From Octopus bimaculoides (taxonomy: Eukaryota): a stretch of 64,000 bases of DNA. The position numbers and the translations under genes were made by a program. The stretch covers positions 4,820,254 through 4,884,253 of the forward strand of contig NC_068985.1 in NCBI RefSeq assembly GCF_001194135.2, in the 5' to 3' direction. This document shows, piece by piece, positions 1,264 to 60,518 of the stretch. The notes beneath the pieces were generated by a model. That model was not told the origin of the DNA, made no database searches, and saw nothing but the letters and a program-made list of their open reading frames with translations. Each line of letters opens with the position of its first letter. Positions within the stretch are counted from its first letter, which is position 1.

Positions 1264-1328
1264 TTTGCCTCTGCCTGTCCAAAATATTTCCGATAAGCAT
1301 CCACTTCCGTTTCGAACATTTTATATTC
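1264..1328 (-). CDS. Cassette 5 long exon A (65 nt): [21 protein letters not shown](K/N); gene continues left of the window
   Basis: Type-A acceptor cttttctag, donor gtaagt. Confidence 0.88.
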
Positions 1329-4300
1329 CTAGAAAAGTTTATAACAAAAGCATTTGTTGTAACTTAATAATAAAAGTGATGATTTGACATTAATAGTTCT
1401 ATCAGGATGAATAAACAACAATAACTGTAATAGTAACAACAATAACCACAAAAATCACAGTCAATGCTCGTACTTCTACTGCTGCTGCTGCTGCTGCTGC
1501 TACTCCAACTATTTTAAAAAAGGAAGACCCCCAACAATTCACCTTAACAGCGAAACAATGCTATCTCTAAAAATGACTGTTACGGGCTCTGGTTTGAGAT
1601 AAAACAGATGAGAGATAACAAGTCTGTGGTTAGGATGCTTGTCTGTTTCAACTCACATTAACGGAGGATCTATTAACTTATTTCCAACAACTACACAAAC
1701 ACAATATGCTGCCTTGTACAAAATAAATAAATAAGAACTCACTTTTGTATATTCATAATATTTTCTTACCACCTCTCTGCAAAAGAAATAAAGGGACATA
1801 CATCACCATGACTATCATCATTAACATCATGATCATCATCATTTTTATATCTCTAGACAAAGAAAAACATCATAAGATTATAACTTTTTGTACAACTTCA
1901 TCTTGAGACATGAATTCTCTTTTAATATTGGAATCTACATTTGGACTTCATTTCAGTTGGTACTTATTTTATCAACCCTGAAAAGAAGGAAAGCAAAAGT
2001 GACCTTAGTGAGATATAAACTCAGAAAGTGAAGATGGACAAAATGCCACTAAGCACTTTGCCTGGCATAGTAACAATTCTGCCAGCTCACCACCATAGCA
2101 AACACAAGGACTTATTGAAATTGTAATACTGAATACAAATACATTTAGTTCTTTCTCACATCACCATTGCCATGGGTACTTTTACTGTTTTCTACATATA
2201 CCTTTATATTGGTTTCAAAATTTTGGCACAAGGCCAGCAACTTTCTGAGAAGGCTACATCAATTACAATGATCCCAGTGCTCAACTGTTACTTATTCTAT
2301 CAAACGTGAAAGGATGAAAGGCAAAGTCAACCTTCGCTGAAATTTGAACTCAGAATGTAAACATGGATGAAATGTCACTAAGCATTATGATTCTCCCAGT
2401 TCTTCATCTTAAAAATATCATTATATTGTGATCACATTTATACAATACAATCTCCTCATTTCATTAGCAATAAAAATCCAATTTAAACAAAATGTAATAA
2501 AAATATTTACATAGCTCTTTCTTTCTGTACATCTCGAGGACTGAACACCTGAATGTAAAACATTTCATAACCCTGCAAATATTCAAAATAAAAGTATATG
2601 TTTAGACTTTATAATAAAATTAATGATTTAACATATGCAGTTCTATTTTACCATGTAATTGACTAAAATTGTGAAGCATGTTATGTAATAACAGGCTTAT
2701 TGGATATGAGATAACAATTCAAAGTAAATAACTCTGAAAAGGGCTTTTGTGTGTTTCCTCAGGAGTGCTAGTGTTGATATATTCATGAATAGGTCACTAA
2801 GTGGATCTATTGCTTAACAAAATACTATTTACTTGTTTAAGAATTGTACTGGATAAATTGTGAAATTAACTTTAACAGTTCAAATACTAAGAAATAAGCA
2901 TATGTAATTTGATTTATACCAAATAATTTAAGAAAATGAATGGGTTATTTCCCTTGGCTTTATATAAGGATCCCTTCTAGGGGCAAATGGATTATTTCCC
3001 TTGGCTTTTAAAATAAAATATATTAGATATAAGGATCCCTTCCAGGGGCCTTATTATCGATTTTTTTTTCAACAATCTGAGTATGCCATGAGGTTTCCAG
3101 TTATGAGTTCTACACATGTGTCAAGTTTCATTAGAAGCGATAAAACAATGTAGGAAGAGTTAGCTAACAACTCCATAAACACACCCACAGACAGAATTTC
3201 CCACATATGTAGTAGATATATATAGAGACAGAGTTAAAGAGATTTATAAGCTGATAATATATAGAATGGTATTCAGCTCCCCCAACAAAATTTTTAATTT
3301 TCGAGCGGTGACTGATGCTTCGAAATTTCATTGAATGCTACACGTTACACTGTTGTGTGAGAGTAGACATTTGTCTGAGAGAGAGAGAAGCTAAGGATAT
3401 GCAATGGTGGAAGAAACTGTTGTAGAGGACAGAACAGATTTACAAGCAAAAATAATAAAGAACCAATTAATAGAACTACTATGAATTATAAGTCTTTTGA
3501 GAAACCTTCATAGATGACAGAATGTTGAAGGGTTTTGCAGGTTTAATTTTAAACCTTTAGCAGATTATTTAGTCACATGCAATGTGTATTTATCTATATT
3601 GTCCTGAATTAATTATGCATTATCTTGTAGATTTGGGATTTCGATGATGTAGATGTAAATTGATGACACCCAAACTACTGGCCATCTTTATCTCCACATG
3701 AGTACAGATGAGGACTTGTAGATTACATGTTACGGATCTTGTTCAAAACGGGGGCACCAGTTTTCATTTATGTTTTATGTAGTGTTTTTGGTACCGAAAG
3801 ACTTTCAAACTTCGTATACTTATCTATTTTGTGTTATAGAACAGAAAAAAATTTTTGTATTCAGATCTATTTCATGTAAAAAATTGTCTTATTTCGATAA
3901 TTTCAACCAATCACTGACGAGTATTCAGCTGTTTACAGTTACTCCTAAGCGGTGTAAAGCGTATTTAATCTCCATTACTTCTGACATTTTGCAGAGGCAA
4001 CACACGTGTGTTCGTTTTCCCTAACCCTAACCGACTTGCTCCTTCCCTCAAAAACCATGCCTTGTGCCTATAATAGAAAGGTTTATTAGCTACTGCCTAT
4101 ATGCTTCAGCCATTTTTTGACAAGGAAATAATAATTTTATCACCGCCGAGAATCGTTTGTTTATGTAGTCAGCACTTAATCTTTACAGCTGAATGGACGT
4201 CAGTCATTGGTTGAAATTACAGAAATACAACAACTTTAACATGAAATAACTTGCAATGTACGTTTTTTTGTTAAGAAGACTAGGAGAAAAAAAAATGTTT

Positions 4301-7300
4301 TATATGACATTCTACCAGTGTCCCAAGTTTCAAAGTGTTTCGTTAAGAAAATACTGGTGCCCCCGTTTTGAACAAGATCCCATGTTACTATTACTACCAC
4401 CACTACCACCACCATCACTACACTTTCGGAGTGGTTGGCATTAGGAAGGGCAACCAGCTGTAGAAACTCTACCAGATCAGACTGAAGTTTCGTGTAGCCA
4501 TCTGGTTTGCCAGTCCCCAGTCAAATCGTGCAACCCATGCTAGCATGGAAAGCAGATGTTAAATGATGATGATAAGAGCATGTAATCCAATATTTCCTTC
4601 CCATTGCATTTCCATAGGTGTATCTATTTCATCAGTTTATAATTAGTTAATACCAGATTTACTAACAGTTCAGTTCTCTTGTAATTGTTTAACCCCAGTC
4701 ATTCCTGATCTTCCAATATACTGCACTGAAAATAAAATATATCAACTAACCTCACGGCCTTTGAAGGATTCTTCCACAAGGTTCCTGCAAAAGAAACAAA
4801 CATATTTTCATCACATCATCATCATCATTTCTACATCAACTCACAAAAAGAACCATTACTGAACTGTTACTTTATGTTTGTACATTTTATTATTTTAATC
4901 TAAATCTAGAATTCAGTTGAATAGGTTCAATTTCTGATTATCACCAGGTATCATATTTGTGGATGTCTGTATAGTATCAAACTGGAATGTATTTAGCATA
5001 TTAAGATTTCTCTGTCAGCAAAAGCAGCCATGGTGAATGAATGTTAGTTTTAGGTATGTTTTAACTGGCTTTTGTTTTAGTTTGGTATATGTAAATAAAT
5101 GTATTTTAAACAATTACAAGTTTTCCAAATTTAGGTGCATTTTCAACAACAAATCTACCTATATATATATATATATTGGAATAAGAATAGCCTGGGCAAA
5201 GTTCAGAGAGCTCTTACCTCTGCTGGCGACAAAGGGCCTCTCACTCAGAGTAAAAGGCAGACTGTATGACACATGTGTACGAACAGCCATGCTACATGGC
5301 AGTGAAACATGGGCCGTGACTGCTGAGGACAAGCGTAAGCTCACAAGGAATGAAGCCAGTATGCTNNNNNNNNNNCAGCCATGCTACATGGCAGTGAAAC
5401 ATGGGCCGTGACTGCTGAGGACAAGCGTAAGCTCACAAGGAATGAAGCCAGTATGCTCCGATAGATGAGTAATGTCAGTGTGCATACCCGACAGAGAGTA
5501 AGTATCTTGAGAGAAAAGTTGAACATAAGAAGCATCAGTTGTGGTGTGCAAGAAAGACGATTACATTGGTGTGGACATGTGGTGAGAATGGACGAGGATA
5601 GCTGCGTGAAAAAGTGCCACACCCTAGTGGTTGAGGGAATCCGTGGAAGAGGCAGGCCTAGGAAGACCTGGGATGTGGTGGTGAAGCACGACCTTCGAAC
5701 ATTAGGCTTCACCGAAGCAATGACTTGTGACTGTGACCTTTGGAAATAAGCTGTGCGTGAGAAGACCCGGCAAGCCAAGTGAGACCAAAATCCAAGGCCT
5801 CTGCCAGGGATGTAGCCAGCCCACTTCTATACCTTTGCTTGAAATCCGTCGAGCTACCAATATATATTCTCCTTTGGCCATTATGGATTTGTACACTACA
5901 TTTATAGATTACATTATTCTGGCAACAATTTTCACTAATCGGACATTTATCTTGCCCTTTATTGGGTTTACTGCTAGCATTACTTATCATACCCCTTTCT
6001 CCCATCCCTCCATTGTCAGGATCGCCGGCATTCATTGTACTTTTGTCCAAGCCTATGTTTGGATTATTTGTCTTACTAATATTATTATCATTATTATTAT
6101 CATCATTACCACCGCCATTCTTACTGTCATTATTCATATCACCATTTGTATTTCTTGTACACCTTTCATGTTCCGTTTCACAAGGTTCCTTAATTCTGTT
6201 ACTAGTATCGATGGTGCCATTAATGAGTTTCACATTATTAAATTTAATATTCTCATCAATATTATTATTATTATTTTCATCATCATCAAATTATTACTTC
6301 TGTCATTACGATTTCTTATTTTATTCCTATTTATTGAAGCGATGATAGACCCCAGATTGGGAGTAACTGAGTACGCTAGCTTTACTGATGATTTGTTACA
6401 AATTGTGTAATATTTGTGATGCTTAGGGAAATTTTCTTTCAACAATTTGAAGAATAATTTTGGAAGACCTTTCACTCTCAGTGAAAATGGAGGGGCAAAC
6501 CAAATCACTTGACGGACTCTAGATTTGGTCTTAGAAATTGGCTTACCAAAAAGTGTTTGACTTCTGTTGCTATACGAGGAGTAGTTTACATTTTTACTGT
6601 TATTCATATTTATATTTATATCTGCATCTTCATTTTTATTGTTATTTTTGTTTTTATTTTTATTTATATCTTTATCTTTGTTTAATTTTTGTTACTATTA
6701 TCATTAGTAATATTCCTCTCATGCCATCATGTAAAATGGATATATGATGATTACTATGACACTGAGCAGTGAATGTTAGGATTTGCCTTGTCTACATTCC
6801 TGACAACAGCCCCTATTAATACTACGCTGGAAATTTTTAAAGAATTCTTAAAAGTTGTAGCTAAAAATTTTTTTTTACTTTATATAATCAAATCTGAGCA
6901 AAATGAAGATAGAACAGGTTGAGATGACAATCTCTGTTAACTGACAGATCTTGGAGATTTAAACAGGATTATTATCTTTACATGGCTTTGTAGCTCATAA
7001 AGATATAAGTTCTTATCCGTTGTTATTGGTACCAAATTTAAAATTTGTTTTAAGTTTCAACTCCATAAAAATGAGATATTTCCATCAAAAAGGAATCAAG
7101 ACTGGAGCGTTCTATCAAACGATTGATGCTGTCGTCATTGTCATTACTGTTTTCATCATCATCATTTAACATCTGCTTTTCTAGCTGGCATGGTTTAGAC
7201 AATCTGGCCGGAGCTGGCAAAGTGGAGAGCGGTAATAGGCTCCAGTCATCTGCTTTAACTAGGCTTCTCTGGCTGGGTACTCCTCCTAATACCAACCACT

Positions 7301-9394
7301 TTACAGGGTGTAGTGGGTGCTTTTATTTGGTACAAGTACAGGTGCTTTTCATGTGGCTCCAGGAAAGATGAATTTTAATTTCAATCAGAGTTTAAACTGT
7401 TTATTTTTCAATTCATTTCTTTTGTTCTTGAAAATTGTTGATCATTTCAACGTGAACTGGGGAAAGAATTGAACCCGAACTGAAAATTCTCCCCTGTCTC
7501 TGTTCTGTGTGTGTATTGAATAAGCTTGAGCCTTTTGTCTTGCAGTTAAATACATACAAACCAAAATAGTATATTAAAAGTTGCATAACTAGGACTTATT
7601 GAAGTTGAAATACTAAACATATATATTTAGTGTTGTCTGATATCAACAATGTCATGGATGCTCTTATTTATACATATTTATATGCATCACAGTCACATAG
7701 TTAAAGATAAGAATCAAGCTTAAACTGAACGTTATAAAATTACGTACCTGGCATCTATGCTTTTAATACTGAATGGATGTTTCTTGATTTTCCTCTTAAA
7801 ACGTTCATATTCCTAGAAGTGTTTACAATAAAAGCATTTGTTGTAACTTTATAATAAAAGCAATGGTTTGACATTAAAAGTTCTATTTTGGACTGGTTTC
7901 AACTCTTCAATGAAACAAAACATTACCTGACTCACAGAAACACTTTAAAAGAAAAAGCTAATCCTTTTCTCTATACATTCTAACTTCCAGTAAAGAGCTG
8001 AAATCATTGACTGATGGGGGATATTACCTAACTTGAGAAGTGATGCAGTAAAGGAACGTAACATAATACTACAAGGCATTTAATCTTGCACTGTAAACTG
8101 ATTTTGATATTCCTTTCTTAAAAGAAGATTCTATGCACTCACTAAAAGATAGCTGCAAATATCTCCCTGAAACCTTGCAGAAAAAAGGCATGGCTATGTG
8201 GTAAGAAGTCTGTTTCCCAACCACAAAGTTACAGGTTCAGTCCCACAACATGTAACCACAGGCAAGTGTTTTCTACTATAGCTTTGGGTTGACCAAAGTC
8301 TTGAAAGTGGATTTGGTTACAGAGACCGAAAGAAGCCTGCCACACATGTGTGTGTGTGCATCTTTGTTTGTCTTGAACCACTGCTTGACAACCAGTGCTG
8401 GTGTATTGATGCCCCTATAACCTAGCAGTCCACCAAAAATGATCAACAGAATAATCTTAAAAACAATAGGTACAGGGGTTGATACATTCCACTAAAAATT
8501 ATGAAAAGTGTTACCCCAGCATGGCCACAGTTTAGCGACTGAAACAAGATGAAAGGTGAAAGATATATTGGATAATGCTGTATCAAGATACACAGTGAGT
8601 CCATTAGCTTCTATTCCAAAGGAAGAATGGGTACTTCTCCTACCAGCCACAAACTCTACCTCTGCCTATCAGCTAAATTGTTGTATGTTGTGTTATCAGA
8701 TGTGAAAAGATGGAAAGCTATGTAGACCTCAGCACAATTTTGAATACAGAAATTCAAGAAAGGTGTTACGCTGTCATTTGATTGCTCAGCTAAATCTTCA
8801 TCAACTATGATCTTTAAAATGTCTTAAACAAGTTTGTTAGAAGGGGCAGGTAAGTTTCATTGATATTTTGGTAGCCCTGTCCCAGACTTGTAAGAATTTC
8901 CATGTATGTTGTTCAACGTCAACATCTGAAGGAAAAACAAATAGATGGAGAGGAAGGTGAGAGAATTCATACTAAAGGCACCCAAGAGGCAGATGGTGGT
9001 GCTAAACTGGGTGGCATGTAAAGCCTGTACCCAGTTTCATGATAAAACAGCCACATATAAAACACCTAGTAGATTCTGTAAAGTTCTCTTCCTAATGCCA
9101 ACCACTTTACAGAATCTACCAGGTGTTTTACATGTGGCACTAGGACCAGTAGAGTTGCTAGGTAACTTGCAAGTCAAAGACTGCTCAGCTGGAACCGAGG
9201 AAAGTGGCTGTGTGCCAGTTGAGAGGTTAGAGTATAATAGATGGGCACAGAGGGATAGTTGTCTAATTATAAAGGAGATACTAATCATCATCATCATCAT
9301 CATTTAACGATGACTTTGATCAGAAGCAAACAGCTGGTCATCTTATGCCCATAAAAAGGAAAATGACGACCTGTAGATTGGAAATCATCATTAC

Positions 9395-9426
<32 letters not shown>

Positions 9427-11137
9427 CAGTTTTAACATCCACATTTTATAGTTTTCATGGGTCTGGTAGAATTCATTCACGTAGATATTTTTTACAGTTT
9501 AAGGATTTAATGTGTTTCCTTGGTCTTTAGACACACATGAAAAAACAACTGGAGCTAAACAACAATAACTGTAATAGTAACAACAATAACCACAAAAATC
9601 ACAGTCAATGTTTCTGCTGCTACTGGTGATGATGCTGTTGTTTTTTAAAACAGGAACACCGTCAACAATTCACCTTCAAAAGCAAAGAGAAATCTTAAAT
9701 CTAAAAACGACTGTTAAGGGCTCTGGTTTGATGAAATAAAACAGACGACAGATAACAAGTCTGTGGTTAGGATGCTTGTCTGTTTCAACTCACATTAACA
9801 GAGCATCTACTAACTTATTTCAAACAGCTACACAAACTCAATATGCTGCCTCGTACAAAATAAAAAAGTAGTGAGAACTAACCGTGTAATTTCGAAAATG
9901 TTTCCTTCCTAGTTTTCTACAAAAGAAATAAAAGAACACACATCATCATGGCTGTCATTATCAACATAATTATCACCATCATTTTAAGTTCTCTAGACAA
10001 AGAGAAACATCATGAGAATATAATATTTTCAACAATAAATTTCATCTTTAGATATTTCAATTACTTTTGTCTCTGAACCTCATTAGGCGTTTTATTCTCA
10101 GCCATATGCATAGTATCAGACTATTAATATTTATCTCTCTGCAAAAACAGAAATATTGGTTTAAAATTTTGGCACCAGGCCTGCAATTTCAAGGGAGTGA
10201 ATAAGTCAATTACATCGACTGCGTAATTACTGGTACTTAGTTTATCAAAAACATGAAGGCCAATAGTGACCTTGGTGCGATATGAAATCAGAATGTGAAG
10301 ATGGACAAAATGACACTAAGCACTTTGCCTGTCATAGTAACAATTCTGCCAGCTCACCACCATACCAAACACAGAAATACTGAACTGATGTCACTTCTGG
10401 CCTTACTAATTGCATTATTGGTAAGACGTATATGTCCTGATTCTTTGATTCTCATGAGTTTCCCACTTTGGAATTACGAAATCTTCATTCTATAGCATTA
10501 TATTCATTCATTTCTCACTCCATATGTANNNNNNNNNNNNNNNNNNNNNNNNNNNNNNNNNNNNNNNNNNNNNNNNNNNNNNNNNNNNNNNNNNNNNNNN
10601 NNNNNNNNNNNNNNNNNNNNNNNNNNNNNNNNNNNNNNNNNNNNNNNNNNNNNNNNNNNTCGCAGTGTTTCATGTACAAGGCCTTCCATAAATGCATGGC
10701 ATGTTATAAATGCAGTTTTACTGTTCCAACTGAAACAATGCAGATGGAGATGCATAAAAAATACATTTTCATCTCAAAAGATGAAGTTAATAATCTGAAA
10801 AACTTATAATCACATCTGCAATAACTCATCTCAAGCATTTACATATTGAAGAAACATTATTCTCAAATTAAAAATACAGCCTTTCTCATTTAGAGAACAA
10901 ACAGACAAAGAAACAAAGAAAAAACAAAACATGTTATTGTGAATCTGTGTAGTTTGGTAGAGTTTTAGAGTAATTAAGAATGAGGCCAGACTGGAGTTTA
11001 TCTTCTGGCGGTCCTTGTGGTCTAAATGGACACCATACAGATTAAAGAACCAAAGCTACATAATCTTCATAAAAGAGGATCACACCTTCAACAGGTCTCA
11101 GATGTAGAATTCCAGTTGGGGCATTTGCTTACTCATT

Positions 11138-11173
<36 letters not shown>

Positions 11174-31523: not shown

Positions 31524-31572
<49 letters not shown>

Positions 31573-46500: not shown

Positions 46501-46653
46501 AGTCGAGCAAACTGACCCCAGGACTTATTCTTTGGAAGCTTAGTACTTATTCTATCAGTCTTTTTGCCGAACTGCTAAGTTACGGGGACGTAAACACACC
46601 AGCATCGGTTGTCAAGCAATGTTGGGGGGACAAACACAGACACAGAAACATAT

Positions 46654-46684
<31 letters not shown>

Positions 46685-47567: not shown

Positions 47568-47609
<42 letters not shown>

Positions 47610-47611
47610 CT

Positions 47612-47651
<40 letters not shown>

Positions 47652-48648
47652 TACACACACACATCATCATCATCATCATCGTCATCATTTAACGTCCACT
47701 TTCCATGCTGGCACGGGTTGGACGGTTTGACTGAGGGACGGCAAGCCAGAAAGCTGCACCAGGCTCCAACCTGATCTGGCAAGGTTTCTACAGTTGGATG
47801 CCCTTCCTAATGCCAACCACTCTGAGAGTGTAGTGGGCGCTTATTATGTGCCAGTCAGGCAGTACTGGCATCGACCACACTTAAATAGTGCTTTTTACCT
47901 GCCACTGGCACAGGACCAGTCAGGTGACATTGGCATTGACCATGCTTAAATGGTGCTTTTTACGTGCTACTGGCATGGGTGTCAATCAGGCAGTACTGTC
48001 ATTGACCACGACAATGACTTCACTTGACTCAACAGGTATTCGCAAGCGCAGTTTATTGCCCAATGATTGAAGGCTACTCCTAAATGGGCCAGTTATGCTG
48101 CACTGGCATAGGCCACAGTTACGGTCTCACTTGGCTTGCTGGATCTTCTTAACCCTTTTGTTACTAACCCGGCCGTAGCCAGCTGAGTGTACCCATTGTT
48201 ATTTAAATGCATATTTGAACCCAAATCTCGTTAGTACATTCGTTAAAACACCTGATTTCACTTTGCAAACAGTTGAGTTATTGTCTCCAACATTGTTTGG
48301 TGTGATATTTGAACTCAGTGTATGTTTGTATATATAAATATATATATAATTGTTGAAGAGAACAACAAACATTAAAGTAAGACAAACATCTCAAGTCATT
48401 CATGTTATTATTATTGGAAGAATTCTGCTATATCGGAAATCTACAACGGTTCCATAACTCCTGTCTTAGCTATGAGCTTGGAGCCCTGGTAATCCATTAC
48501 GGCACTTACCCAGCATACCTAGTCATTTAGATCTACTGTGAAGTAAACCCCATATTTTGTTTATATATATATATATATACATATATATGTATCAGATATA
48601 TATTAATATATATATATGTATATATATATATATGTATGTATACATATA

Positions 48649-48721
<73 letters not shown>

Positions 48722-51700: not shown

Positions 51701-54700
51701 GAATTGAGCGGGAACGCTTGGTTGTTTAATTCTACGCATGCATGAGACTACGCATGCGCACGGCGTTACTACAGGGCTCCCTTGCCAGTGCGGAAACGCA
51801 CGATAAATGAAATCTGTTAGAACGCCTGAGGCAGGATGGCCACTGAAAAACCACCCACAAGATGTAGCACAAAACACACACAATGANNNNNNNNNNNNNN
51901 NNNNNNNNNNNNNGTATAAATGAAATGACAATGACAAAACAACCGTGATGACAACTGTCCAGGAAACTGGAATCACACGATGTAAAAGTCTGAGTGTTTG
52001 TTTTCCCTGAAAGGAAAGAAAATGTATGAGTGCACAAGTGTGTGTGTGAGAAGAAACACAGAACAAGTGAAAGTGTCTGTAGTATAGACTGCGAAAAGTC
52101 CCAAAACACCGAGATAGAGTACATTGATGAAGACGTCGGTGCAGGAACTGCTATAGCTGTGTTCTGTATGTGTGGTGGTAATGATGTTGACAGTGGTAAT
52201 GGGTCAGTTGAAACTTGGCGACGTCGGGGGGAATGCTTGTAGTTGGTAGTAGTCATTAAATTTCCCTCAAATTCCACCCTACCTTCTTATGAAGAAACAT
52301 ACAATGGATAACGTATACAAAAGATTAGGGTTTTACAGCTGGGACACTTTTGATCATAGGTTTACAGGATCTGTATCGACCTAGGGTTGATCAATAATCA
52401 AAACACACTCAGATGATGCTGCATTTCGACATCATCCATGCACAATCTATCAGATCAGATACACTCTATCTCCAAGAACAGAAACTGCACACAAAATCAA
52501 CAGGACTAACAGTTACTTACTATCATATTCCATTTGACTTTATCAAGAATTTTCTTAGCCGTCATCTCATCAGTACTTGTCCAATAGGTGAATGCCAGTA
52601 ACTTCGTATAATCATTTATTCTGAAAAAAAAATTTTTTTTTTTTTAAATAAAAGTGTGCATTGTTCCAGTCATTAGACTGTGGCCATGCTGGGGCACTGC
52701 TTTAAAGAATTTTTAGTTGAATAAATTGACATCAGTACTTTTTTTGTTTTTTAACCCTTGTACTTATTCTATTGATCTCTTTTGTTGAACCACTACGTTA
52801 ATGGAATGTAAACACCAACACTGGATACCAAGTGGTAGTGGGGGACAAACACACACACACACACACACAGATATACGATGGACTTCTTTCAGTTTTCTTC
52901 TACCAAAGCCATACAAGGCTTTGGTCAGTCTGATGCTAACAGTAGAAAACACTTGCCCAAAGTGTGATGCAGTGAGACCATGTAGTTGGGAAGCAAGTTT
53001 CTTGCCAGCTGGCTGGCTGTCCATTTATCAGGTTATGTGCTAGGATTGTTAAGTTAAGAATAGCCTTGTTGGATATAACAATGTCAGTTATCTCTACATA
53101 TGCTGACGTGTTGGGCCTCAAGAAGACAAAGCAGCTGAGTTCCTTTCAAGTGCTGGGCCTCATGGAGGCAATGACTGAGACCTTTGGCATTATGTCGTGC
53201 TTGAGAAGAAGACCCATCAAGCTGAGCAAAATTGGCAGATACTGGTGTCATCCAAATTGGCACATGTGCTGGTGGCACCTAAAAGCACTCATTACACTCT
53301 CGGAATGGTTAGCGTTAGGAAGGACATCCAGCTGTAGAAAATTATGCTAACTCAGACTGGAGGCTGGTGCAGCCTGGTCAAACCGTCCAACTCATGCCAC
53401 CAGCATGGATGTCGGGCATTAAAGATGGTAACAGCTTTAGCTCTAGAGATGAGGAGGGGACAAGGTTTCTAGAGTTTTGTGATGCTCATGGCTTACTGGT
53501 CTGCAACATTCACTTCAGGAAACCTACCAACCATCTGATCACTTATCAACCTGATGGGTTCATCCTCACTAGACACAGGGACAGCTGTATGCTCATAAAT
53601 GCAAGGTCAACTGATTTCTATGGCCAAAGTAAAGCCTCTGCCAGACCAAGGATGACATGGTGGTGGAACAGTGACACTGACAAGGCCATAAATGGAAAGA
53701 AACAGCTCTGGAATAGAGTGGGTAGCAAAGAATTATACCAGAAAGTTAAAAGGGAAGCTAGATGCCTGGTTTACCTGGATAAGGCAGAAGCAAAAAGGAA
53801 AAAGTATGCCAATGTCATGAAGAAGGAAGATCAGAGACTAGAGGTATTCTGGATTGCGAGACAGTGAGTCAAAATAGAATTGAGATATTGTGGGAGAGAA
53901 GTGAGTATGGATTGATAATGGTATGCTTGCACTTAGTGATTCAGACAAGAAAGAGGCATGGAAAAGATACTATGCAAAGCTACTGAATGTAGAGAATGAA
54001 TGGGATAATGCAATTCCCAACAGAGGGACCGGCTGTCCTCGTGGACACCAGTCTGGTAGATAAAGCAATTAAAGACATGACAGAAAACAGGGAAAGCCTT
54101 TGGTCCATCTGGAGATGCTCAAAATATCTGGTAAGATAGGATATGGACTAGTCAGTCACCCACTTAGTTAATCAGGTTATTTAGAAAGGCATAATATCCA
54201 ATGACTGGTGTAGCAGCATTATCGTTAGCTGCTACAAGAGTGAGGCAGATGCCTTAGAAGTAATTATAGAAGCATCAAATTGCTGGACCAACCACACTGA
54301 GAGTGTAATGGATGCTTTTTATGTGTCACCGGCACAGGTGCTGTTTACATGACACTGGTAACAGTCATGGTTACGATTTCACAGGTGCCATTTACATGAC
54401 ACTGACAATGGTCACAAGTATAGTTTCATTTGCTTTGATGAGTCTTCTCAAGCACAGCATATCGCCAAAGGTCTCTGTCACTAGTCATTGCCTCTGTGAC
54501 ACATTCGAAGATCATTCGAAGATCATGCTTCACCACTTCATTCCATGTCTTCCTGGGTCTACCTCTTCCACAGGTTCCCTTCACAATTACAAATTAGCAT
54601 TTCTTTACACAGCTGTCCTTGTCCATACACCTCACATGACTATACCAGCACATTCATTTCTTTTGTACATCACATCTGATGCCTCTTATGCCCAGTTCCA

Positions 54701-57700
54701 CTCATGCACACTGACATTGCGCATCCAGTGAAGCATACAAGCTTCATTTCTTTCAAACCTTTACCTGTCATATGCAGTCACAGGCCACATAATGGAAGTG
54801 ACCATAATTTTTTTTTATCTTCTTTCTTGACTATTAACATCCCATTACTACTATTATCACCACATCCACAACCCTTATCACCAACATCAAACTACCACCA
54901 CCACCACCACCACCATCATCATCATCAATATAACTACCACACAACCAATCACTGTCAATGCTTACCATTCATGGTAAATGCAAAGGAACAACAATTGCCA
55001 CAATCAGACCTCACCTACCTTTGCTGTGGCTACCACCAATACAACTGACAAGCATTCTATAAATCATTTTAACAGCTAAATTTACCCCAATCTTATTGCA
55101 TAATGTTGGCTGTCCGATAAGAAGCTTACTTCCCAATCGCAGTTATGGGTCCAATCCCACTGTATGGCATCTTGAGTAAGTGTCTTCTGTAACCTCAGGC
55201 AACCAAGGCCTTGTCATTAGATTTGGCAGATAAAACTGATAGAAGCCTGTCATACATACCTAAGTGTGTGAGTGTGTGTGTGTATGTGTGTGTGTGAGTG
55301 TGAGTGTGTGTGTATCTGTCTTTATTCTCCACTACAGCTTGAAAACCAGTATTAGTGTATTAACATCCCTTTAACCTAGTAGTTCAGTAAAAGAGACTGA
55401 TAGAATAAGTACCAGGCTTAAAAGTAAATAAGTACTGGGGTCGATTCATTTGACTAAAATTTGCTCAAGGCGGTTCCCCATCATGGCCACAGTTCGATGA
55501 CTAAAACAAGTTAAGAGATAAAAGACAGGATGGTCATAACAGGAATGTGTTTCATCATAGATATGCTCAATCATATAAATAAATAATATCAAATAACAAT
55601 CTTTTCAACTCTAAGCACAAGGCCCGAAATTTTAGGGGAGGGAGCCAGTTGATCAGATTGACCCCAGTACACAACTAGTACTTAATTTATTGACTTCAAA
55701 AGGATGAAAGGCAAAGTCGACCTCGGACGAATTTGAACTCAGAATGTAAAGACAGATGAAATGCCACTAAGCATTTCATCAGCTCGCCACCTTAATAACA
55801 TCAAATAACATCACAAGCACACACACACGCACACACACACACACACACAAAAGATTAGACTGTGGCACTCCATATGATAAAGTACTGTATGCTAGAGTGA
55901 ACAATATTGCTATATTTCTCTAATAGGCAGAAGTATGGCATATCTGTTGTTGTTGGTTAACCCTAGGTCAACCCTAAATGAGCAGATCTATGACAAAAAG
56001 TTCTCCAGTCATGGCCATCTTGTTCTTTTGTAAATTTAGGACTACAGTGTCTAATGTGTGCTTTGATATGGTAGGTGTGAAGGCATGTGGCTTAGTTCTT
56101 GGAGTATTAAGCTCAAGGTCGTACAGTCGTGAGTTCAATTCCTGGCAGCGTGTTGTGTCCTTGAGCAGGACACTTTATTTCAAATTACTCCAGTTCACTC
56201 AGTTGGCAAAAATGAGTTGTACCTGTATTTTAAAGTGCCAGCCTCATGAGACTGTATTATGCTGAATCTCCTTGTAAACTATGTTAAGGGTACATGAGTC
56301 TGTGGAGTGCCCAGCCACTTGCACATTAATTTCATGAGCAGGCCTTTCCATTGATCGGATCAACTGGAACACTCATCATCATAACTGATAGAATGCCAGT
56401 TTTGGTAGGTGTGATTTGAGGAATATTTGGTTGTTATTTGGAGCAGTTCAAACACCTACATGGAAGTGTTCATAATGGACCATGGTATAACTAAAAAATA
56501 AATATGTGCAAGATACACTTAGTCTTTTGAATGCAGCCTACTTGAGCTGGGGATACACAAGAAAAATAAATTACAGCAGAGCACACAAAAAGTCAACTTA
56601 CGGTTCTCCTTGCTTTATTGTATAATCTGGCGCCAATTGAACATCTTCATTAGGTTTAGCTGCAGCAACTTTTATGAAATCGAAGGACTTTTTAATGTCC
56701 TGACAAAGAAAATTTTATATGCTTTATCATGTATTATTAGAACAGTCAACGGTGAAATTGGTAGAATGGAAAATAAACTGACATTTGATATGTAGTAACA
56801 TTCCTGTCTTTTATCCTTCCAAGGTTGATAAAATATGTAACATTCAAGCATTGGGTTGATATAATTGATTACACACTCCTATAGAATTGTGAATTTGTGC
56901 CTACATTAGAAATCGTTATGTACTCATACATACCAAACGTACTCCATATAAAAGCATATGTCATATGGTATAGAGAACCCTGCCATTTTTCTAGTTGGTG
57001 AGCACATTAAACCATCCAGTTTACCTAGCCCATGAATGCCTTTGATAGAGTCCACCCTGTAGCAAGTATATAGACCAGGCTTTCAGCAAGGTGTTCCCAG
57101 AACCTACTGACACAGTTCACTTTTCACACTTCTCCAAAATATCAGTTTCAAATTTTGGCACAAGACCAGCAATTTCAAGGGAGGGAGTAAGTTGAATACA
57201 TCAACCCCACTGCACAACTGATATTTATCGTATCAACCCTGAAAGGATGAAAATCTAAGTCAACCATGGCAGAATCTGAACTCAGAATATAGAGAAAGAT
57301 GAAATACTGCTAAGCATTTGGCAAGCAAACTGCCTTACACTTCACCAGAATATCAAAAACTATAGCAAAACCCATTGGACAATTCTTCCCACCCTCTTCC
57401 TTTTTAACATTTGTAGATTTCATTCCAATTTAGATTCTACTCATTATCTCTTACTAGCTTGCAAACTGCACAACCTATTTGTCTCTGAGAAACAAATTTT
57501 TAAACCGCCATCTATGGTTCATCTCTAAACATCCAGACCATATGCTTTACTTAAACTTCACTCGGAAAGGAGATGTCTGCACATAGGTAAGCTCCAATTT
57601 CCCAGTCAATCACCACCCTCACTTGGATTTTAATCTGACTCAAAGTCTCCTTCCCTCCCTCACATACAATCACTTCTTCTCTACTCTTTGAATTCTTTAA

Positions 57701-60518
57701 ACCAACAGCAACTCTTCAACCATATCTCCTCTCAAATTTATCTCATTTCTAAAGTTATCATAGTTAGTGACTTTAATGCTCACAACTCCCCTAGTGCCTC
57801 CCAGACACATCTCATGTTGATGCTATTGGAGCAAAAAATAAATCTTTTGCAATTCTTAATTCTTCTCAGAGAAAGGAACAAGTTGTGCGGTATGCAAACT
57901 ATTAAGAATAGGATCTAAATTGGAATGAAATCTACAGATGTTACAAAAGAAGAGGGTGGGAGGAATTGTTCAGTAGGTTTAGTTCTAGTTTCTGATATTT
58001 TGGAGAAGTGTAAAAAAGTAAAGGGTGACAGTGTCTCAAGAGATCATGGGAACTCCTTGCTGGAAGCCTGGTTTAAATGCATTTCTGACCAACACACTTC
58101 TTTCTCACCTCCAAACCTAACCTCTGCTAGACCATAATTGCCTCAGTATGTATCAGGTTGTCCAATAAATACCTCATCATAACTACCCAATACATCCACA
58201 TACTACAGTATGTGGATGTATATTGGGTGAAGGCATACAGTTTAGTCGTGAAGGTATTTGGTTCATGATTATAAGGTCATGAATTCAATTCCTGGCATTG
58301 TGTAGCATCCTTGAGCAGGGCACTTTATTTCTTGTTGCTTCAGTCCACTCAGCTGGCAAAAATGAGTTGAACCTGTATTTCAAAGGACCGACCTTGTAAC
58401 ATTGTGTCACACAGAATCACCCAAAGATACATGTGTCAGTGGAGTGCTCAGCCTCTTGTGCATTAATTTCATGAGCAAGTTATTTTGTTGATCAAATTAA
58501 ACTGGAATTTGCGTCATCATAACTGACAGTGCCAGTTTGACGCAATATCCACCCACTACCATACCTAGATGCTACGCACTTCAAGTCAGTCAACTAGTTG
58601 AAGCTCCACCAGTTTTATGCAAAGTATCCCAGGTCCATCACAATTAGACAGGTGACTGAAACAATCCTTTTAGGCATCTTCCTCCACTTCCTGCACAAAA
58701 CAAAACTCAATGCCTCAAGCTCACAAGTGGTTGACTCTGAGATAATTAACAGCAGTTCAAGCCAAAGGACAGAACTACTGAACCTAGAAATTGGAGCTTG
58801 TTTACCTAGCATGTAACTCTTGCAAAACCATTGTCTAAACTGAAAAGGATGCCTTTGTGCATCACACAGTCTGCAAGCCTTCCACTTTCCAAACTGCAGC
58901 TGACCCTTTTGGTCCCTTGCTAAAAGAAACTTCTCTAAGTTTTCAGAATCCTCATTTCCTTCATTTCTCAATAATAATGGCCAAGTAAGCTGTAACTCCA
59001 TGCCTTCCATGGAGAAAGCCTCTACCTTCACTGCCTGCTTTTCATCCAACTCATGGGAAAATCTGACATTATCAGAGGCAGAGCAAGCTAGTTTCTTTGA
59101 ACATTTCCTAACCCAGGATGAGTGTTGGGTTCATCACTATATATCAGAGACAAAGAGGCAATCTATGCAGTGGAAACACCCCTCCTCACCTATTCGAAAG
59201 GAGGCCAAGGTCATTTCATATGCAGGGAAGGTGATGGCCTCAGTTCTTTTAGATCCAAAAGTAACAAGACACATCCAGTTTCTGAGTATAGTCATTGGTT
59301 GGTTTTGAAATCTTACCAATGGTAGCCCATAATCCTGCAAAGTATTCTGGCATCAAAAGAGTTTAGGTGGCTCCTAGTCCAAGTCTTGCAACTGCAGAGC
59401 AAAAGAGGGAGGACTAGTTTCAGTAGCCTAAGATAGGAAACTAGTCCATACCAGTTAACTTGCTTTTGCATGAAAAACTTGATTCTTCAAGCTAACAAAA
59501 CATTTGTCATGAACACTGTGGTGAGTTATTCAATATACAGTGACTACTAACAGTGAAGTGAACTCAACCACCAAAAATGGATACATCATATTGCTGGTAC
59601 AAAGTTGACTTAGCCATGCATACATTTTTTTACTGTTTCTAAAAGAATTACAAATGGTACAGTTGTGCTATGATACAGAAGCTTTTTCCAAAGAGAATTA
59701 ACAATATAATTGAGAGAATAAGAGTTTAATCCAGTCTGTTTTCCATGTTAGCATGGGTTGGACAGTTTGAGAGAAGCTGGTAAGGCCAGGAGCTGGTAAG
59801 GCCAGGAGCTGGTAAGGCCAGGATCTGGTAAAGCCAGGAGCTGGTAAAGCCAGGAGCTGGTAAGGCCAGGAACTGGTAAGGCCAGAAGCTGGTACGGTCA
59901 GGAGCTGGTAAGGCCAGGAGCTGGTAAGGCCAGGAGCTGGTAAGGCCAGGGGCTGTAGCAGGTTCCATTATCTGCTTTGGCTTGCTTCCTACAGCTGGAT
60001 GCCTTTTTAATGCCACACACTTTACAGAGTGTACTGGGTCCTTTTTATGTGGAACCAGCACCAGTGCATTTTATATGGCACCAGTACCAGCACCAGCACA
60101 TGTAGTTATGATGTCTACAATGCACAGCACCATTTCTATTTCCCATTTCAGTCAGTATCATTAGATAACCAGGTACAAAGACACCCAGAAAACATATATA
60201 AAAACAAATTTACAACTCCATCAAACCCACAAGATTATAGGAAAAAGTAAATTAAAATTTTGAAAAAAAAAAAAAAATTAAATTAATCTGTGTTATCATC
60301 AAGTGGGAAAATTGAATTATATATGGCCTGTCTTATTGGCAGCCACATCTGAGGTCTTTGAGTCAACTTAATTGTAGATAAAGAAACAAAATTTACCAAA
60401 AAGTAAAGAAGTAAAAAAAAATACATGAAAAGAAAATTGCCAACTCACCTCATTTTTGAATGTTTTTTCTTTATCTTTGAAAAGTTTGTAGGTCTTACAG
60501 AATTCCATCTGAGCAATC
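1264..60518 (-). CDS. Partial multi-exon gene (22 exons, ~400 aa in window): unique N-terminal exons with a UBA-like motif, then a tandem array of ~29-33 aa helical repeats; uncharacterised protein
   Basis: All 22 exons have canonical AG/GT ends with pyrimidine tracts, their phases chain without conflict, and there is no stop. Joined translation: [400 protein letters not shown]. The gene is open at both ends. No transcript evidence is available to me. Confidence 0.88.
1743..1776 (-). CDS. Cassette 4 micro-exon b (34 nt): [11 protein letters not shown]
   Basis: Acceptor tttcttttgcag, donor AAA|gtgagt. Confidence 0.88.
2511..2572 (-). CDS. Cassette 4 long exon B (62 nt): [20 protein letters not shown](I)
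   Basis: Type-B acceptor gaatatttgcag, donor gtaaat. Confidence 0.9.
3734..4380. mobile_element. Non-autonomous DNA transposon (MITE) with 28-bp perfect TIRs and an 8-bp TSD; Merlin- or hAT-like
   Basis: TIR GGATCTTGTTCAAAACGGGGGCACCAGT at 3734-3761, with its reverse complement ending at 4380. Flanking direct repeat CATGTTAC at 3726-3733 and 4381-4388. Confidence 0.9.
4751..4784 (-). CDS. Cassette 4 micro-exon a (34 nt): [11 protein letters not shown]
   Basis: Acceptor gtttcttttgcag, donor GAG|gttagt. Confidence 0.9.
5178..5825 (+). mobile_element. RTE-clade LINE 3' fragment
   Basis: [13 protein letters not shown]...LHGSETW...[12 protein letters not shown]...[10 protein letters not shown] matches the RTE C-terminal region. 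About 80 bp is repeated across the small gap at 5366-5375, probably an assembly overlap. Confidence 0.9.
5826..6545 (-). mobile_element. Penelope-like element fragment (RT C-terminal region, linker, GIY-YIG endonuclease start)
   Basis: ORF 6230..6607(-) contains [13 protein letters not shown]...[32 protein letters not shown] 5709..6233(-) contains CPISENC...VIYKCSV...[13 protein letters not shown] (GIY-YIG motif). Confidence 0.8.
7748..7812 (-). CDS. Cassette 4 long exon A (65 nt): [21 protein letters not shown](R)
   Basis: Type-A acceptor cacttctag, donor CAG|gtacgt. Confidence 0.9.
9883..9916 (-). CDS. Cassette 3 micro-exon b (34 nt): [11 protein letters not shown]
   Basis: Acceptor tttcttttgtag, donor ACG|gttagt. 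Confidence 0.88.
11140..11600 (-). repeat. Dispersed SINE-like / RTE-tail family ending in (GAT)n; representative copy
   Basis: Shared core (cat)n-tttaacgtc...ccatgctagcatgggttgg...ttctacagctggatgcccttcctaacgccaaccact, with ~40-50 bp internal subrepeats. About 20 copies (approximate positions): 555-750, 4420-4575, 7160-7360, 15170-15465, 18620-18810, 21410-22170, 22970-23250, 31590-31830, 35575-35975, 37080-37440, 41950-42300, 43490-43830, 45020-45365, 46040-46230, 47660-48150, 53180-53430, 59720-60110, 61580-61860, 63740-64000. Confidence 0.85.
13030..13215 (+). mobile_element. Decayed non-LTR retrotransposon fragment (region before the RT)
   Basis: [29 protein letters not shown], then (frameshift) [16 protein letters not shown], resembling the K-A-x-G-x-D...W...IPI-x-KKG motif. 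Confidence 0.6.
13745..13806 (-). CDS. Cassette 3 long exon B (62 nt): [20 protein letters not shown](I)
   Basis: Type-B acceptor gaatatttatag, donor gtaaat. Confidence 0.9.
16564..16628. repeat. 15/16-bp tandem repeat (GATCTTATAGATAAT[T]) x4
   Basis: Read directly from the sequence. Confidence 0.85.
17172..17205 (-). CDS. Cassette 3 micro-exon a (34 nt): [11 protein letters not shown]
   Basis: Acceptor gtttcttttgcag, donor GAG|gttagt. Confidence 0.9.
19144..19208 (-). CDS. Cassette 3 long exon A (65 nt): [21 protein letters not shown](K)
   Basis: Type-A acceptor ctcttctag, donor gtatgt. Confidence 0.9.
19347..20215 (+). mobile_element. piggyBac-like transposon, 5' part with a decayed transposase
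   Basis: Begins TTAA|CCCTTT. Acidic N-terminus ([13 protein letters not shown]) is followed by PLDFF...[10 protein letters not shown]...[27 protein letters not shown], typical of DDE_Tnp_1_7/PGBD-like proteins. Contains stops and frameshifts. Confidence 0.85.
22798..22831 (-). CDS. Cassette 2 micro-exon b (34 nt): [11 protein letters not shown]
   Basis: Acceptor ttccttttgtag, donor AAG|gttagt. Confidence 0.9.
23250..23830 (-). mobile_element. Decayed RTE LINE 3' fragment
   Basis: Minus strand has an RGRPRKTW-like motif and similarity to the RTE copy at 5178-5825. Boundaries are approximate. Confidence 0.65.
24567..24628 (-). CDS. Cassette 2 long exon B (62 nt): [20 protein letters not shown](K)
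   Basis: Type-B acceptor gaatatttgtag, donor gtaaat. Confidence 0.9.
26025..26052 (-). CDS. Cassette 2 micro-exon a (28 nt): EIAEKCFSK
   Basis: Acceptor tacttttgtag, donor AAG|gttagt. The -6 nt preserves the frame. Confidence 0.85.
27624..27682 (-). CDS. Cassette 2 long exon A (59 nt): [19 protein letters not shown](L)
   Basis: Type-A acceptor context, donor gtaagt. The -6 nt preserves the frame. Confidence 0.88.
29255..29291 (-). CDS. Cassette 1 micro-exon b (37 nt): [12 protein letters not shown]
   Basis: Acceptor tttcttttacag, donor CTG|gttagt. The +3 nt relative to other micro-exons preserves the frame. Confidence 0.88.
29459..29679. mobile_element. TTAA-flanked MITE (piggyBac-like ends), 221 bp
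   Basis: TTAA|CCCTTTAG ... CTAAAGGG|TTAA. The paralogous intron near 10055-10090 lacks the insert. Related partial copies lie near 3545-3650, 15778-15975, 16490-16570 and 18248-18400. Confidence 0.75.
31527..31572. repeat. (AAT)n microsatellite
   Basis: About 15 uninterrupted AAT units. Confidence 0.95.
31925..31986 (-). CDS. Cassette 1 long exon B (62 nt): [20 protein letters not shown](L)
   Basis: Conserved type-B acceptor context (tttcattttgaatatag), donor gtaagt. Confidence 0.9.
34268..35575 (+). mobile_element. RTE-clade LINE (RT core to 3' end; middle lies in an N gap)
   Basis: [21 protein letters not shown]...[13 protein letters not shown] before the gap (34569-35511). RTE 3' tail (gacctttggaaatgtgctgtgcgtgagaagacc) after the gap. 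Confidence 0.9.
38765..38798 (-). CDS. Cassette 1 micro-exon a (34 nt): [11 protein letters not shown]
   Basis: Acceptor ttttcttttgcag, donor CCG|gttagt. Confidence 0.88.
39953..40017 (-). CDS. Cassette 1 long exon A (65 nt): [21 protein letters not shown](E)
   Basis: Conserved type-A acceptor context (cttttctag), donor gtaagt. Confidence 0.9.
40426..41703 (-). mobile_element. Full-length mariner-like element (1278 bp) with a decayed transposase; middle lies in an N gap
   Basis: TIRs tcaggtcatcccataagt(t)ctgtcc at both ends, flanked by TA. N-terminal HTH: [34 protein letters not shown]...[14 protein letters not shown]-terminus: [27 protein letters not shown]. Confidence 0.9.
42417..42630. 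mobile_element. Tc1/mariner-like MITE
   Basis: Imperfect ~24-bp TIRs: tatagggtgggccaaaagtcatgc versus the reverse complement tacagagtaggccaaaagtcacac. AT-rich interior. Confidence 0.6.
42850..42883 (-). CDS. Micro-exon type b (34 nt, phase 2->0): [11 protein letters not shown]
   Basis: Acceptor ttattttgcag, donor AAG|gttagt. Paralogous to the other micro-exons. Confidence 0.88.
43830..45010 (-). mobile_element. Decayed RTE LINE (RT to 3' region)
   Basis: IDLEKAF near 44990, YADDLAL near 44730, and [27 protein letters not shown] in ORF 43949..44131(-). Confidence 0.8.
45365..45690 (-). mobile_element. Mariner transposase C-terminal fragment
   Basis: [29 protein letters not shown], then (frameshift) [10 protein letters not shown], matching the mariner C-terminus. 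Confidence 0.65.
45923..45987 (-). CDS. Exon 4 (65 nt, phase 0->2): [21 protein letters not shown](L)
   Basis: Acceptor tcttgaaatttcag, donor GCT|gtgagt. Same size and phase as the long array exons. Confidence 0.78.
46435..46660. repeat. Second abundant dispersed repeat family (ttgtttcagtcatttgactgtggccatgctggagcac...agttacggggacgtaaacacacc); representative copy
   Basis: Related copies at about 8185-8560, 36250-36640, 37930-38370, 52660-53000, 55110-55520, 61060-61230 and 62630-62980, usually next to (CA)n/(TA)n tracts. Confidence 0.8.
46650..47690. repeat. (TA)n/(CA)n/(CAT)n microsatellite complex around an N gap
   Basis: Read directly. A similar complex lies at 48560-48721, and other gaps are also flanked by simple repeats. 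Confidence 0.9.
48153..48320 (+). mobile_element. 5' end fragment of the same piggyBac-like family as 19347
   Basis: TTAA|CCCTTTTGTTACTAACCCGG..., near-identical to 19347-19560 apart from an internal deletion. Confidence 0.8.
49090..51420 (-). mobile_element. CR1/L2-like LINE ORF2, 5'-truncated, with stops and frameshifts
   Basis: [51 protein letters not shown] and YADD in ORFs 50134..51078, 49705..50016 and 49104..49373 (all -). Confidence 0.92.
52521..52620 (-). CDS. Exon 3 (100 nt, phase 2->0): [36 protein letters not shown]-like motif
   Basis: Acceptor is poly-T followed by cag; donor ATA|gtaagt; open frame. The A-x-x-I-L-x-x-x-x-W-N-M-x-x-A pattern continues into exon 4. Confidence 0.82.
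53430..54290 (+). mobile_element. Decayed RTE LINE fragment (endonuclease end to linker)
   Basis: [34 protein letters not shown]...WWWN...[12 protein letters not shown] in ORF 53367..53867(+). Confidence 0.75.
54470..54790 (-). mobile_element. RTE LINE 3' fragment
   Basis: Same motif as 23250-23830 (gaagatcatgcttcaccac...gtcttcctgggtctacctcttccacagg). Confidence 0.65.
56085..56400 (+). repeat. tRNA-derived SINE copy
   Basis: A-box/B-box-like head (tggcttagt...gagttcaattcctggc) followed by a shared body. Relatives at 58228-58535, 61285-61360, 30790-30980 and 28040-28270 (reverse strand). Confidence 0.65.
56602..56699 (-). CDS. Exon 2 (98 nt, phase 0->2): [32 protein letters not shown](P)
   Basis: Acceptor ttttctttgtcag, donor ACC|gtaagt; open frame. 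Confidence 0.78.
59090..59262 (+). mobile_element. Mariner transposase catalytic-domain fragment
   Basis: [29 protein letters not shown]...[14 protein letters not shown] matches the mariner (I/V)TGDETW..Y.PE.K.QS.QW...K...SAGKVM motif. Confidence 0.75.
59775..59951. repeat. 16-bp minisatellite (AGCTGGTAAGGCCAGG) x11
   Basis: ctggta recurs every 16 nt from 59777 to 59937, embedded in a SINE-like copy. Confidence 0.9.
60449..60518 (-). CDS. Exon 1 in window (70 nt, phase 2->0): [23 protein letters not shown]
   Basis: Acceptor ctttaattgcag, donor GAG|gtgagt. Also visible inside ORF-track entry 60368..60622(-). Phase fits the next exon. Confidence 0.75.

Follow-up and report, generated by a model that had tools for sequence, protein, structure and literature searches.

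Is an array of alternating long and very short exons in the genome of Octopus bimaculoides part of a maintained gene, and what would such a gene encode? The window analyzed here is a stretch of 64,000 nucleotides (contig NC_068985.1, positions 4,820,254 to 4,884,253). An earlier note, made from its sequence alone, had proposed a hidden protein-coding gene with 19 alternating exons and three unique exons upstream. I recovered the minus-strand exons independently of that list, by scanning for AG..GT intervals, open frames, and motifs and then joining the intervals. As shown in Table 1, the array consists of 19 minus-strand exons that alternate strictly between ten long exons and nine micro-exons, with AG and GT at the bounds of every exon. 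The proposed lengths, phases, and GT-AG ends were reproduced exactly. The array exons joined together give 935 nt, or 311 codons, without a stop codon, and their introns are 0.4-7 kb in length. Each pair of a long exon and a micro-exon amounts to 87-99 nt, always a multiple of three, and thus a pair can be gained or lost without a frame shift. With the three upstream exons, the 22 exons add up to 1,203 nt, or 400 codons uninterrupted by a stop codon, and occupy 2.0% of the span, just as the predicted ~400 stop-free codons and coding density of about 2 percent would have it. The coding sequence runs on 5′ of exon 60449-60518, beyond the window, and the transcript continues past exon 1264-1328, also outside the window.

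Table 1. Coding exons of the window in transcript order. Class refers to the similarity of the intron flanks; identity is the number of residues identical to the Octopus sinensis orthologue.
Exon	Position	Strand	Length (nt)	Phase	Class	Identity	Remark
Unique exon 1	60449..60518	-	70	2->0		19/23	
Unique exon 2	56602..56699	-	98	0->2		17/33	
Unique exon 3	52521..52620	-	100	2->0		25/33	orthologue residues 329-361
Long exon 1	45923..45987	-	65	0->2		21/22	
Micro-exon 1	42850..42883	-	34	2->0			
Long exon 2	39953..40017	-	65	0->2	A		junctions both sides
Micro-exon 2	38765..38798	-	34	2->0	a1		
Long exon 3	31925..31986	-	62	0->2	B		
Micro-exon 3	29255..29291	-	37	2->0	b		
Long exon 4	27624..27682	-	59	0->2	A		junctions both sides
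Micro-exon 4	26025..26052	-	28	2->0	a1		
Long exon 5	24567..24628	-	62	0->2	B		
Micro-exon 5	22798..22831	-	34	2->0	b		
Long exon 6	19144..19208	-	65	0->2	A		
Micro-exon 6	17172..17205	-	34	2->0	a2		junctions both sides
Long exon 7	13745..13806	-	62	0->2	B		
Micro-exon 7	9883..9916	-	34	2->0	b		
Long exon 8	7748..7812	-	65	0->2	A		junctions both sides
Micro-exon 8	4751..4784	-	34	2->0	a2		
Long exon 9	2511..2572	-	62	0->2	B		junctions both sides
Micro-exon 9	1743..1776	-	34	2->0	b		
Long exon 10	1264..1328	-	65	0->2	A		

Could such a pattern be a product of chance? The window is AT-rich (37% G+C) and contains 13 N-gaps, and chance alone provides its minus strand with open AG..GT intervals of matching sizes, 199 of them long and 336 micro. 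Thus, GT-AG ends around an open frame are a weak argument when taken alone, and the abundance of such intervals would suit a pseudogene or a non-coding RNA whose frame is open by chance or by the choice of intervals. In contrast, the chance that 400 codons stay open across 22 independently confirmed exons is ~4e-13 for a fixed frame, the frame and the motif are kept in three related species, and the joined peptide shares 75% of its residues with a protein of O. sinensis; the pseudogene or non-coding reading is effectively refuted. The comparison with related species covers exons 1264 and 1743, which keep the frame and have no stop codons, so the frameshifts and stops that the earlier note had named as the mark of a pseudogene did not appear in them. 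Since the contigs of other species retrieved at 85% likeness included other repeat copies, only the cleanest contigs were read.

The repeat character of the peptide was assessed with a leave-one-out profile. The nine array repeats score 5.7-31 bits, compared with about 0 +/- 3 for shuffled sequences, and seven of the nine exceed every shuffle, the exceptions being the repeats of exons 45923 and 31925. The peptide of exon 52521-52620, the top splice-site and open-frame candidate within its interval, does not score as an array repeat with this profile. Queries made of an exon plus its flanks recovered exactly 10 long and 9 micro units in the window and no extra or decayed unit copies in the introns. 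Taken together, the peptide-repeat scores, the class-conserved intron flanks, the RNA junction reads, and the colinear orthologue argue that the array is non-random. An Rfam search of the window gave no match.

Is the array transcribed and spliced as modeled? The RNA data consisted of the deep RNA-seq runs X24, X38, and X39 and the RNA contigs of run X17, with seven intervals aligned; about 6% of each run was sampled, and the typical junction support was 10-57 reads per run. As the libraries are unstranded, three features gave the strand: the splice dinucleotides, the frame that stays open, and the orthologue. The spliced reads show CT..AC on the plus strand, that is, GT..AG on the minus strand. 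The claim of a spliced gene, for which RNA-seq junctions had been suggested as the check, found support at 14 junctions with spliced reads, at 4 by exact overhangs of reads or contigs, and at 1 by the length of an RNA contig.

The junctions with spliced reads are, in transcript order, 60449|56699 (29, 24, and 13 reads and an X17 contig), 42850|40017 (38, 28, and 16 reads and a contig), 39953|38798 (43, 20, and 15 reads), 29255|27682 (9, 17, and 11 reads and a contig), 27624|26052 and 26025|24628, 24567|22831 (15, 20, and 10 reads and a contig), 19144|17205 (20, 12, and 11 reads and a contig), 17172|13806 (27, 22, and 12 reads and a contig), 9883|7812 (31, 31, and 8 reads and a contig), 7748|4784 (57, 12, and 14 reads, across the gap 5366-5375), 4751|2572, and finally 2511|1776 and 1743|1328 (about 50, 25, and 18 reads each). 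The overhangs concern 45923|42883, where reads reaching past 42883 match the 3′ end of exon 45923 (47, 32, and 33 reads), 38765|31986, where the overhang of an X17 contig crosses a 943-N gap, 31925|29291, with exact overhangs past 29291 (20, 14, and 12 reads and a contig), and 22798|19208, with overhangs past 19208 (17 reads and a contig). The junction 13745|9916 was inferred from the length of the 441-nt X17 contig and from orthologue colinearity. The junctions 56602|52620 and 52521|45987 were not seen in the reads and rest on RNA words and orthologue colinearity; for exon 52521-52620, the nine sampled words are all found in 14 or more RNA runs, which come from several studies, and the adjacent intron is found in none of them.

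The reads also revealed two amino acid polymorphisms in exon 1264-1328. One is 1309 G>A (Thr7Met), in runs X39 and X17, and the other is 1318 A>T (Met4Lys), in about a third of the X24 reads; at the 1318 codon, the related species and O. sinensis have Lys.

Are the exons joined one after another, or are they cassettes to be chosen from? Conserved intronic sequence beside duplicated exons is typical of alternative or mutually exclusive clusters such as Dscam, and skipping any long-micro pair would keep the frame. However, a Dscam-like cluster contributes one exon per mRNA, while all of the junctions found here join neighbors, the X17 contigs (1,127, 164, and 441 nt) are exactly as long as serial inclusion predicts, and the O. 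sinensis protein carries every repeat in order. It is thus very improbable that the array consists of cassettes without serial splicing. In the 1,127-nt contig, exon 39953-40017 takes positions 815-880, and of the 814 nt upstream of this exon, 367 nt were placed in the window, with ~447 nt lying further 5′. The 441-nt contig fits 30+34+62+34+65+34 nt before exon 2511 and extends 22 nt past exon 1264. No exon skipping was seen in the RNA reads and contigs. An apparent skip from 17172 to 2572 was rejected: here the 441-nt contig had aligned across similar copies through 16 bases that they share, and the overhang of 182 letters is the remainder of the contig. Many partial RNA reads are recruited by microsatellites (trinucleotide CAG/CAA/ATC-type and CA; 1471-1511, 9393-9427, 22895-22943, and 55818-55851) and by high-copy repeats (e.g., 23027-23213, 15188-15373, and 41943-42083), and they crowd the junction and overhang tables. 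These reads almost certainly derive from other genomic copies.

All assembly gaps lie inside introns, at 5366-5375, 10529-10659, 12306-12870, 20344-21132, 28761-28815, 34569-35511, 39431-39533, 40743-41246, 46692-47567, 48722-49044, and 51887-51913. Do they hide further exons? The exons flanking the gaps 5366-5375, 28761-28815, 39431-39533, and 40743-41246 are joined directly by spliced reads. The gap 34569-35511 is bridged by the RNA contig running from 38765 directly into 31986, the gap 20344-21132 by 17 reads and a contig from 19208 into 22798, and the gaps 10529-10659 and 12306-12870 (in the intron 9917-13744) by the length of the 441-nt contig. The three gaps of the intron 45988-52520 are covered only by orthologue colinearity. 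Since the alignment with the orthologue is colinear with 3 gap positions, no exon is hidden in the gaps.

Two duplicates beside gaps look like assembly artefacts. An 82-nt perfect duplicate lies on either side of the 10-N gap (5284-5365 and 5376-5457), as from an unmerged overlap. Next to the gap 39431-39533, a 119-nt stretch (39534-39652) is 100% identical to 26695-26813 in the intron of a neighboring a1 unit, while the sequence around it is only 86% alike, as if reads had been assigned to the wrong repeat copy. The introns also harbor fragments of non-LTR retrotransposons (50134-51078 on the minus strand, and 34275-34568 and 53367-53867 on the plus strand).

Which protein is encoded? When the 33-residue peptide of exon 52521-52620 was used for an exhaustive HMMER search, an orthologue was found, XP_036358878.1, annotated as "uncharacterized protein LOC115212235" of Octopus sinensis and 1,935 amino acids in length. 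It was the sole true match (E = 5e-7); the other matches (P0122-P0124) are unrelated repeat proteins with only a 'YWTTTNE'-like word in common. The gene LOC115212235 has a range of 310 kb on a 135.9-Mb chromosome of GCA_006345805.1 and a coding density of ~1.9%. The 400-residue window peptide aligns with residues 273-673 of the orthologue, with 300 of 402 positions identical (75%), in a colinear manner and with 3 gap positions. With this colinearity, the order of the 22 exons is confirmed throughout. Identity reaches 90-95% in several exons (21/22, 20/21, and 10/11), and others are far less conserved (e.g., 3/10 and 12/21). The orthologue has 2 extra residues at the boundary of micro-exon 29255-29291 and long exon 27624-27682, and ~1,260 more residues beyond the window. 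The window accounts for about 21% of the coding sequence.

These results support the maintained protein-coding gene that had been proposed: the octopus gene is genuine and transcribed, and about a fifth of it lies in the window. As for its being hidden, the ORF track did miss it, but RefSeq models the O. sinensis counterpart as an uncharacterized protein. The O. sinensis gene shares the repeat order, the UBA-like module, and a similar coding density with the gene in the window; it differs at 3 indel positions relative to the window peptide and is a computed model only. In the library searched, the literature did not describe this gene. Searches of a protein word index with the joined peptides as queries gave no match, and these were false negatives, the orthologue being present in the collection. 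As a control for those searches, an intronic reverse-transcriptase ORF matched O. sinensis and Argonauta proteins in the same collection; the best named matches of this 314-amino-acid ORF are in Argonauta hians and Octopus sinensis, which points to an octopod source. A word index that misses a 75%-identical protein of 1,935 residues gives negatives that do not mean that a homologue is absent.

In summary, it is very likely that the window carries 22 consecutive coding exons (about codons 273-673) of the LOC115212235 orthologue, with a proposed array origin and a putative scaffold role as set out below. The exons are spliced in series into one mRNA. The array may have grown by tandem duplication of a two-exon module and later by duplication of a four-exon unit (long A, micro a, long B, and micro b; 66 residues, ~11-12 kb). 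A linker and a fourth UBA-like module would come from the three upstream exons. The protein would be a long alpha-helical repeat rod or scaffold, connecting N-terminal UBA-like modules (of the ubiquitin-like-binding type) to a C-terminal region and a tail.

How did the array arise? By the similarity of their intron flanks, the long exons fall into classes A and B and the micro-exons into classes a1, a2, and b (Table 1). The window contains four and a quarter copies of the A,a,B,b unit of ~11-12 kb. The pair 45923/42850 that precedes these copies is older and divergent, and the intron flanks of long exon 45923 show no similarity to those of the other units. Within a class, the 100 nt upstream of the long exons are 85-90% identical, compared with 61-65% for the exons themselves. 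Across eight independent copy pairs, 34% of the exon positions mismatch, and the 100 nt flanking the exon on either side mismatch at 19% (odds ratio 2.2, p = 1.7e-9); the most extreme values are 48% and 13%. Where two copies are closest, it is inside the exon that their identity drops. The repeats correspond one-to-one with those of O. sinensis at 73-78% average identity, compared with only ~12-40% within the array. Thus, the array predates the split from O. sinensis, and each repeat keeps its own sequence.

Exons that differ more than their introns might suggest that the repeats form a hypervariable surface and that diversifying selection acts on it, as happens in venom or recognition proteins. 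In favor of this, besides the mismatch of 34% against 19%, nearly all of the changes in exons 1264 and 1743 in close relatives alter an amino acid, and exon 1264 has the two amino acid polymorphisms mentioned above. However, the comparison with the relatives covers 99 nt, taken from two exons that are among the less conserved (12/21 and 8/11 identical to O. sinensis), the repeats are conserved one-to-one with O. sinensis, including several exons at 90-95%, and between copies both synonymous and non-synonymous differences are raised. Intron homogenization explains this pattern better, and diversifying selection is unlikely to be the cause. In close relatives, the flanks differ by ~3-8%, roughly the genome-wide level implied by shared 31-mers, and thus they do not appear to be strongly constrained. 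As the most economical reading of the sequence, I infer that the introns may have been homogenized by gene conversion or unequal exchange, while selection preserves each exon. Intron homogenization also fits a mosaic in which the best-partner copies differ upstream and downstream of each exon.

What does the repeat look like as a protein? The orthologue consists, in order, of N-terminal UBA-like modules, 33-residue repeats, a region of ~200 residues, and an Ala/Glu/Lys-rich tail. Its repeat array comprises ~33 copies over residues 362-1446 (1,085 residues), of which the 19 alternating exons of the window encode 9.5. The long exon encodes helix 1, (D/E/G)Y-x-x-F-x-x-E-L, and a loop often with Pro, and the micro-exon encodes helix 2, x-L-A-E-x-Y/H-F-x-G. 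In the orthologue, A-type repeats (EY-x-x-F-x-K-E-V-x-x-YP-x-x-F...AKKLAE-x-YFKG) and B-type repeats (GY-x-x-F/L-x-x-E-L...IDKERAK-x-LA-x-K-Y/H-F-G) alternate to give a 66-residue super-repeat. The conserved aromatic and aliphatic residues are spaced i, i+3, i+7 in helix 1 and i, i+3, i+4, i+8 in helix 2. This spacing places them on one face of each helix and fits helices packing together. With four orthologue repeats and an 8-row alignment of the protein's own repeats as input, AlphaFold2 gave two helices (~10 and ~12 residues) and a short loop per repeat (mean pLDDT 77, pTM 0.53); since the pTM is only 0.53, the packing between repeats is uncertain.

The 33-residue helix-loop-helix unit might be a diverged form of a known alpha-solenoid (TPR, Sel1, HAT, or ankyrin) beyond the reach of profile detection. 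The spacing of its small and aromatic residues loosely recalls that of the conserved residues in TPR. On the other hand, the TPR, ANK, HEAT, and Sel1 models of Pfam did not match the natural peptides at E <= 10, the repeat profile found no match among PDB sequences, and a Foldseek search of the repeat model against the PDB found no analogue (best E = 1.9, TM <= 0.34). Descent from one of these solenoids is quite improbable. Pfam and PDB-sequence searches with the joined window peptide likewise gave no family match for the repeat. The Pfam matches to an artificially triplicated repeat pair (PepSY and others) were discarded as one weak helix match repeated three times. Thus, the repeat that the earlier note did not recognize has no Pfam, PDB-sequence, or Foldseek match; the gene is already modeled in O. 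sinensis, and its repeat belongs to no described family.

In the orthologue, UBA_4 scores 33.8 bits against a Pfam cut-off of 21.8, and UBA_8 scores 29.3 bits against a cut-off of 26, its best stretch being the region that matches exon 52521-52620. The window peptide alone gives UBA_8 at 12.3 bits (E = 0.15) at this exon, an individually weak match. Three N-terminal copies of the UBA-like motif are visible by eye in the orthologue. A profile of these three modules scores 11.2 bits on exon 52521-52620, compared with -1.4 +/- 3.5 for shuffles and a maximum of 9.3 among 200 of them. The motif A-x-x-(F/Y/I)-L-x-K-x-x-W-(N/D) occurs four times, once in this exon. Exon 52521-52620 probably encodes a fourth UBA-like module. 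All three exons described as unique do lie upstream, but the third is probably one of a set of modules.

UBA_4 and UBA_8 are found at the N-termini of p47/UBX-type adaptors. The orthologue resembles such adaptors (UBA-SEP-UBX, p47/UBXN-type) in passing the UBA_4 and UBA_8 cut-offs, but SEP and UBX were not detected, and the adaptors are without the 1,085-residue repeat array and the Ala/Glu/Lys-rich tail. For UBX, Pfam gave no match in the orthologue. A SEP-like stretch seen by eye before the tail found no support; it had no Pfam or PDB match, and its AlphaFold model was unusable (pLDDT 39). The tail of ~290 residues (~1640-1935) is almost wholly Ala, Glu, and Lys. The predicted role would be that of an intracellular adaptor or spacer rather than an enzyme, with helical hairpins forming a rod of over 1,000 residues.

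How does this gene compare with known genes built from exon modules or micro-exons? Nebulin, apolipoprotein(a) with its two-exon kringle IV, and NBPF with its Olduvai doublets of a small and a large exon are genes of exon-module duplication. As in the window, their repeat is a fixed exon module with a length that is a multiple of 3 nt, first in tandem and then in larger super-units. Unlike in those genes, a ~62-nt exon and a ~34-nt micro-exon here split one 33-residue helical hairpin, and their proteins are unrelated in sequence to the window protein. Exon-module duplication is thus a known gene structure; what is unusual here is the regular long/micro split, the number of micro-exons, and the contrast between introns and exons.

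The MEGs of schistosomes have runs of symmetric micro-exons that are alternatively spliced and encode a secreted protein, and the neural micro-exons dependent on SRRM4/eMIC are very short, with UGC near the 3′ splice site and neural-specific inclusion. Both resemble the gene in the window in having many exons of <=37 nt in one gene. In contrast to those of the MEGs, the micro-exons here are 3n+1 nt in length, alternate with 59-65-nt exons, and are never skipped in the RNA reads and contigs. In the comparison with SRRM4/eMIC, the micro-exons of the window are 28-37 nt and 5 of 9 acceptors are TGCAG, the tissues of the RNA runs being coded. The micro-exon donors are the weak non-consensus GTTAGT in 8 of 9, compared with GTAAGT, GTAAAT, GTATGT, GTACGT, or GTGAGT in the long exons. 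This donor and acceptor pattern (e.g., around micro-exon 5, at 22792-22797 and 22832-22843) may bear on the recognition of the micro-exons.

What does this locus mean? The correct 22-exon model could be obtained from the raw sequence alone at a coding density of 2%, even with nine exons of 28-37 nt, a size that many aligners and gene finders drop. The protein pairs UBA-like modules with a repeat of no known family and an Ala/Glu/Lys-rich tail. If the pattern of the window holds for all of the ~33 repeats, the gene would have ~33 micro-exons, all included, and would be an extreme case of an exon-module repeat gene. The locus is useful for asking how 34-nt exons are always recognized between introns of 0.4-7 kb. 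The alike introns and unlike exons of an array older than the O. sinensis split are testable as a case of concerted evolution restricted to introns. It is possible, as a tentative proposal, that the gene is an orphan restricted to octopods or cephalopods, whose ~33 constitutive micro-exons of ~34 nt are recognized via flanks homogenized by gene conversion, with each exon conserved individually. If this were true, the gene would offer a natural, internally replicated system for the study of micro-exon definition and of intron-only concerted evolution.
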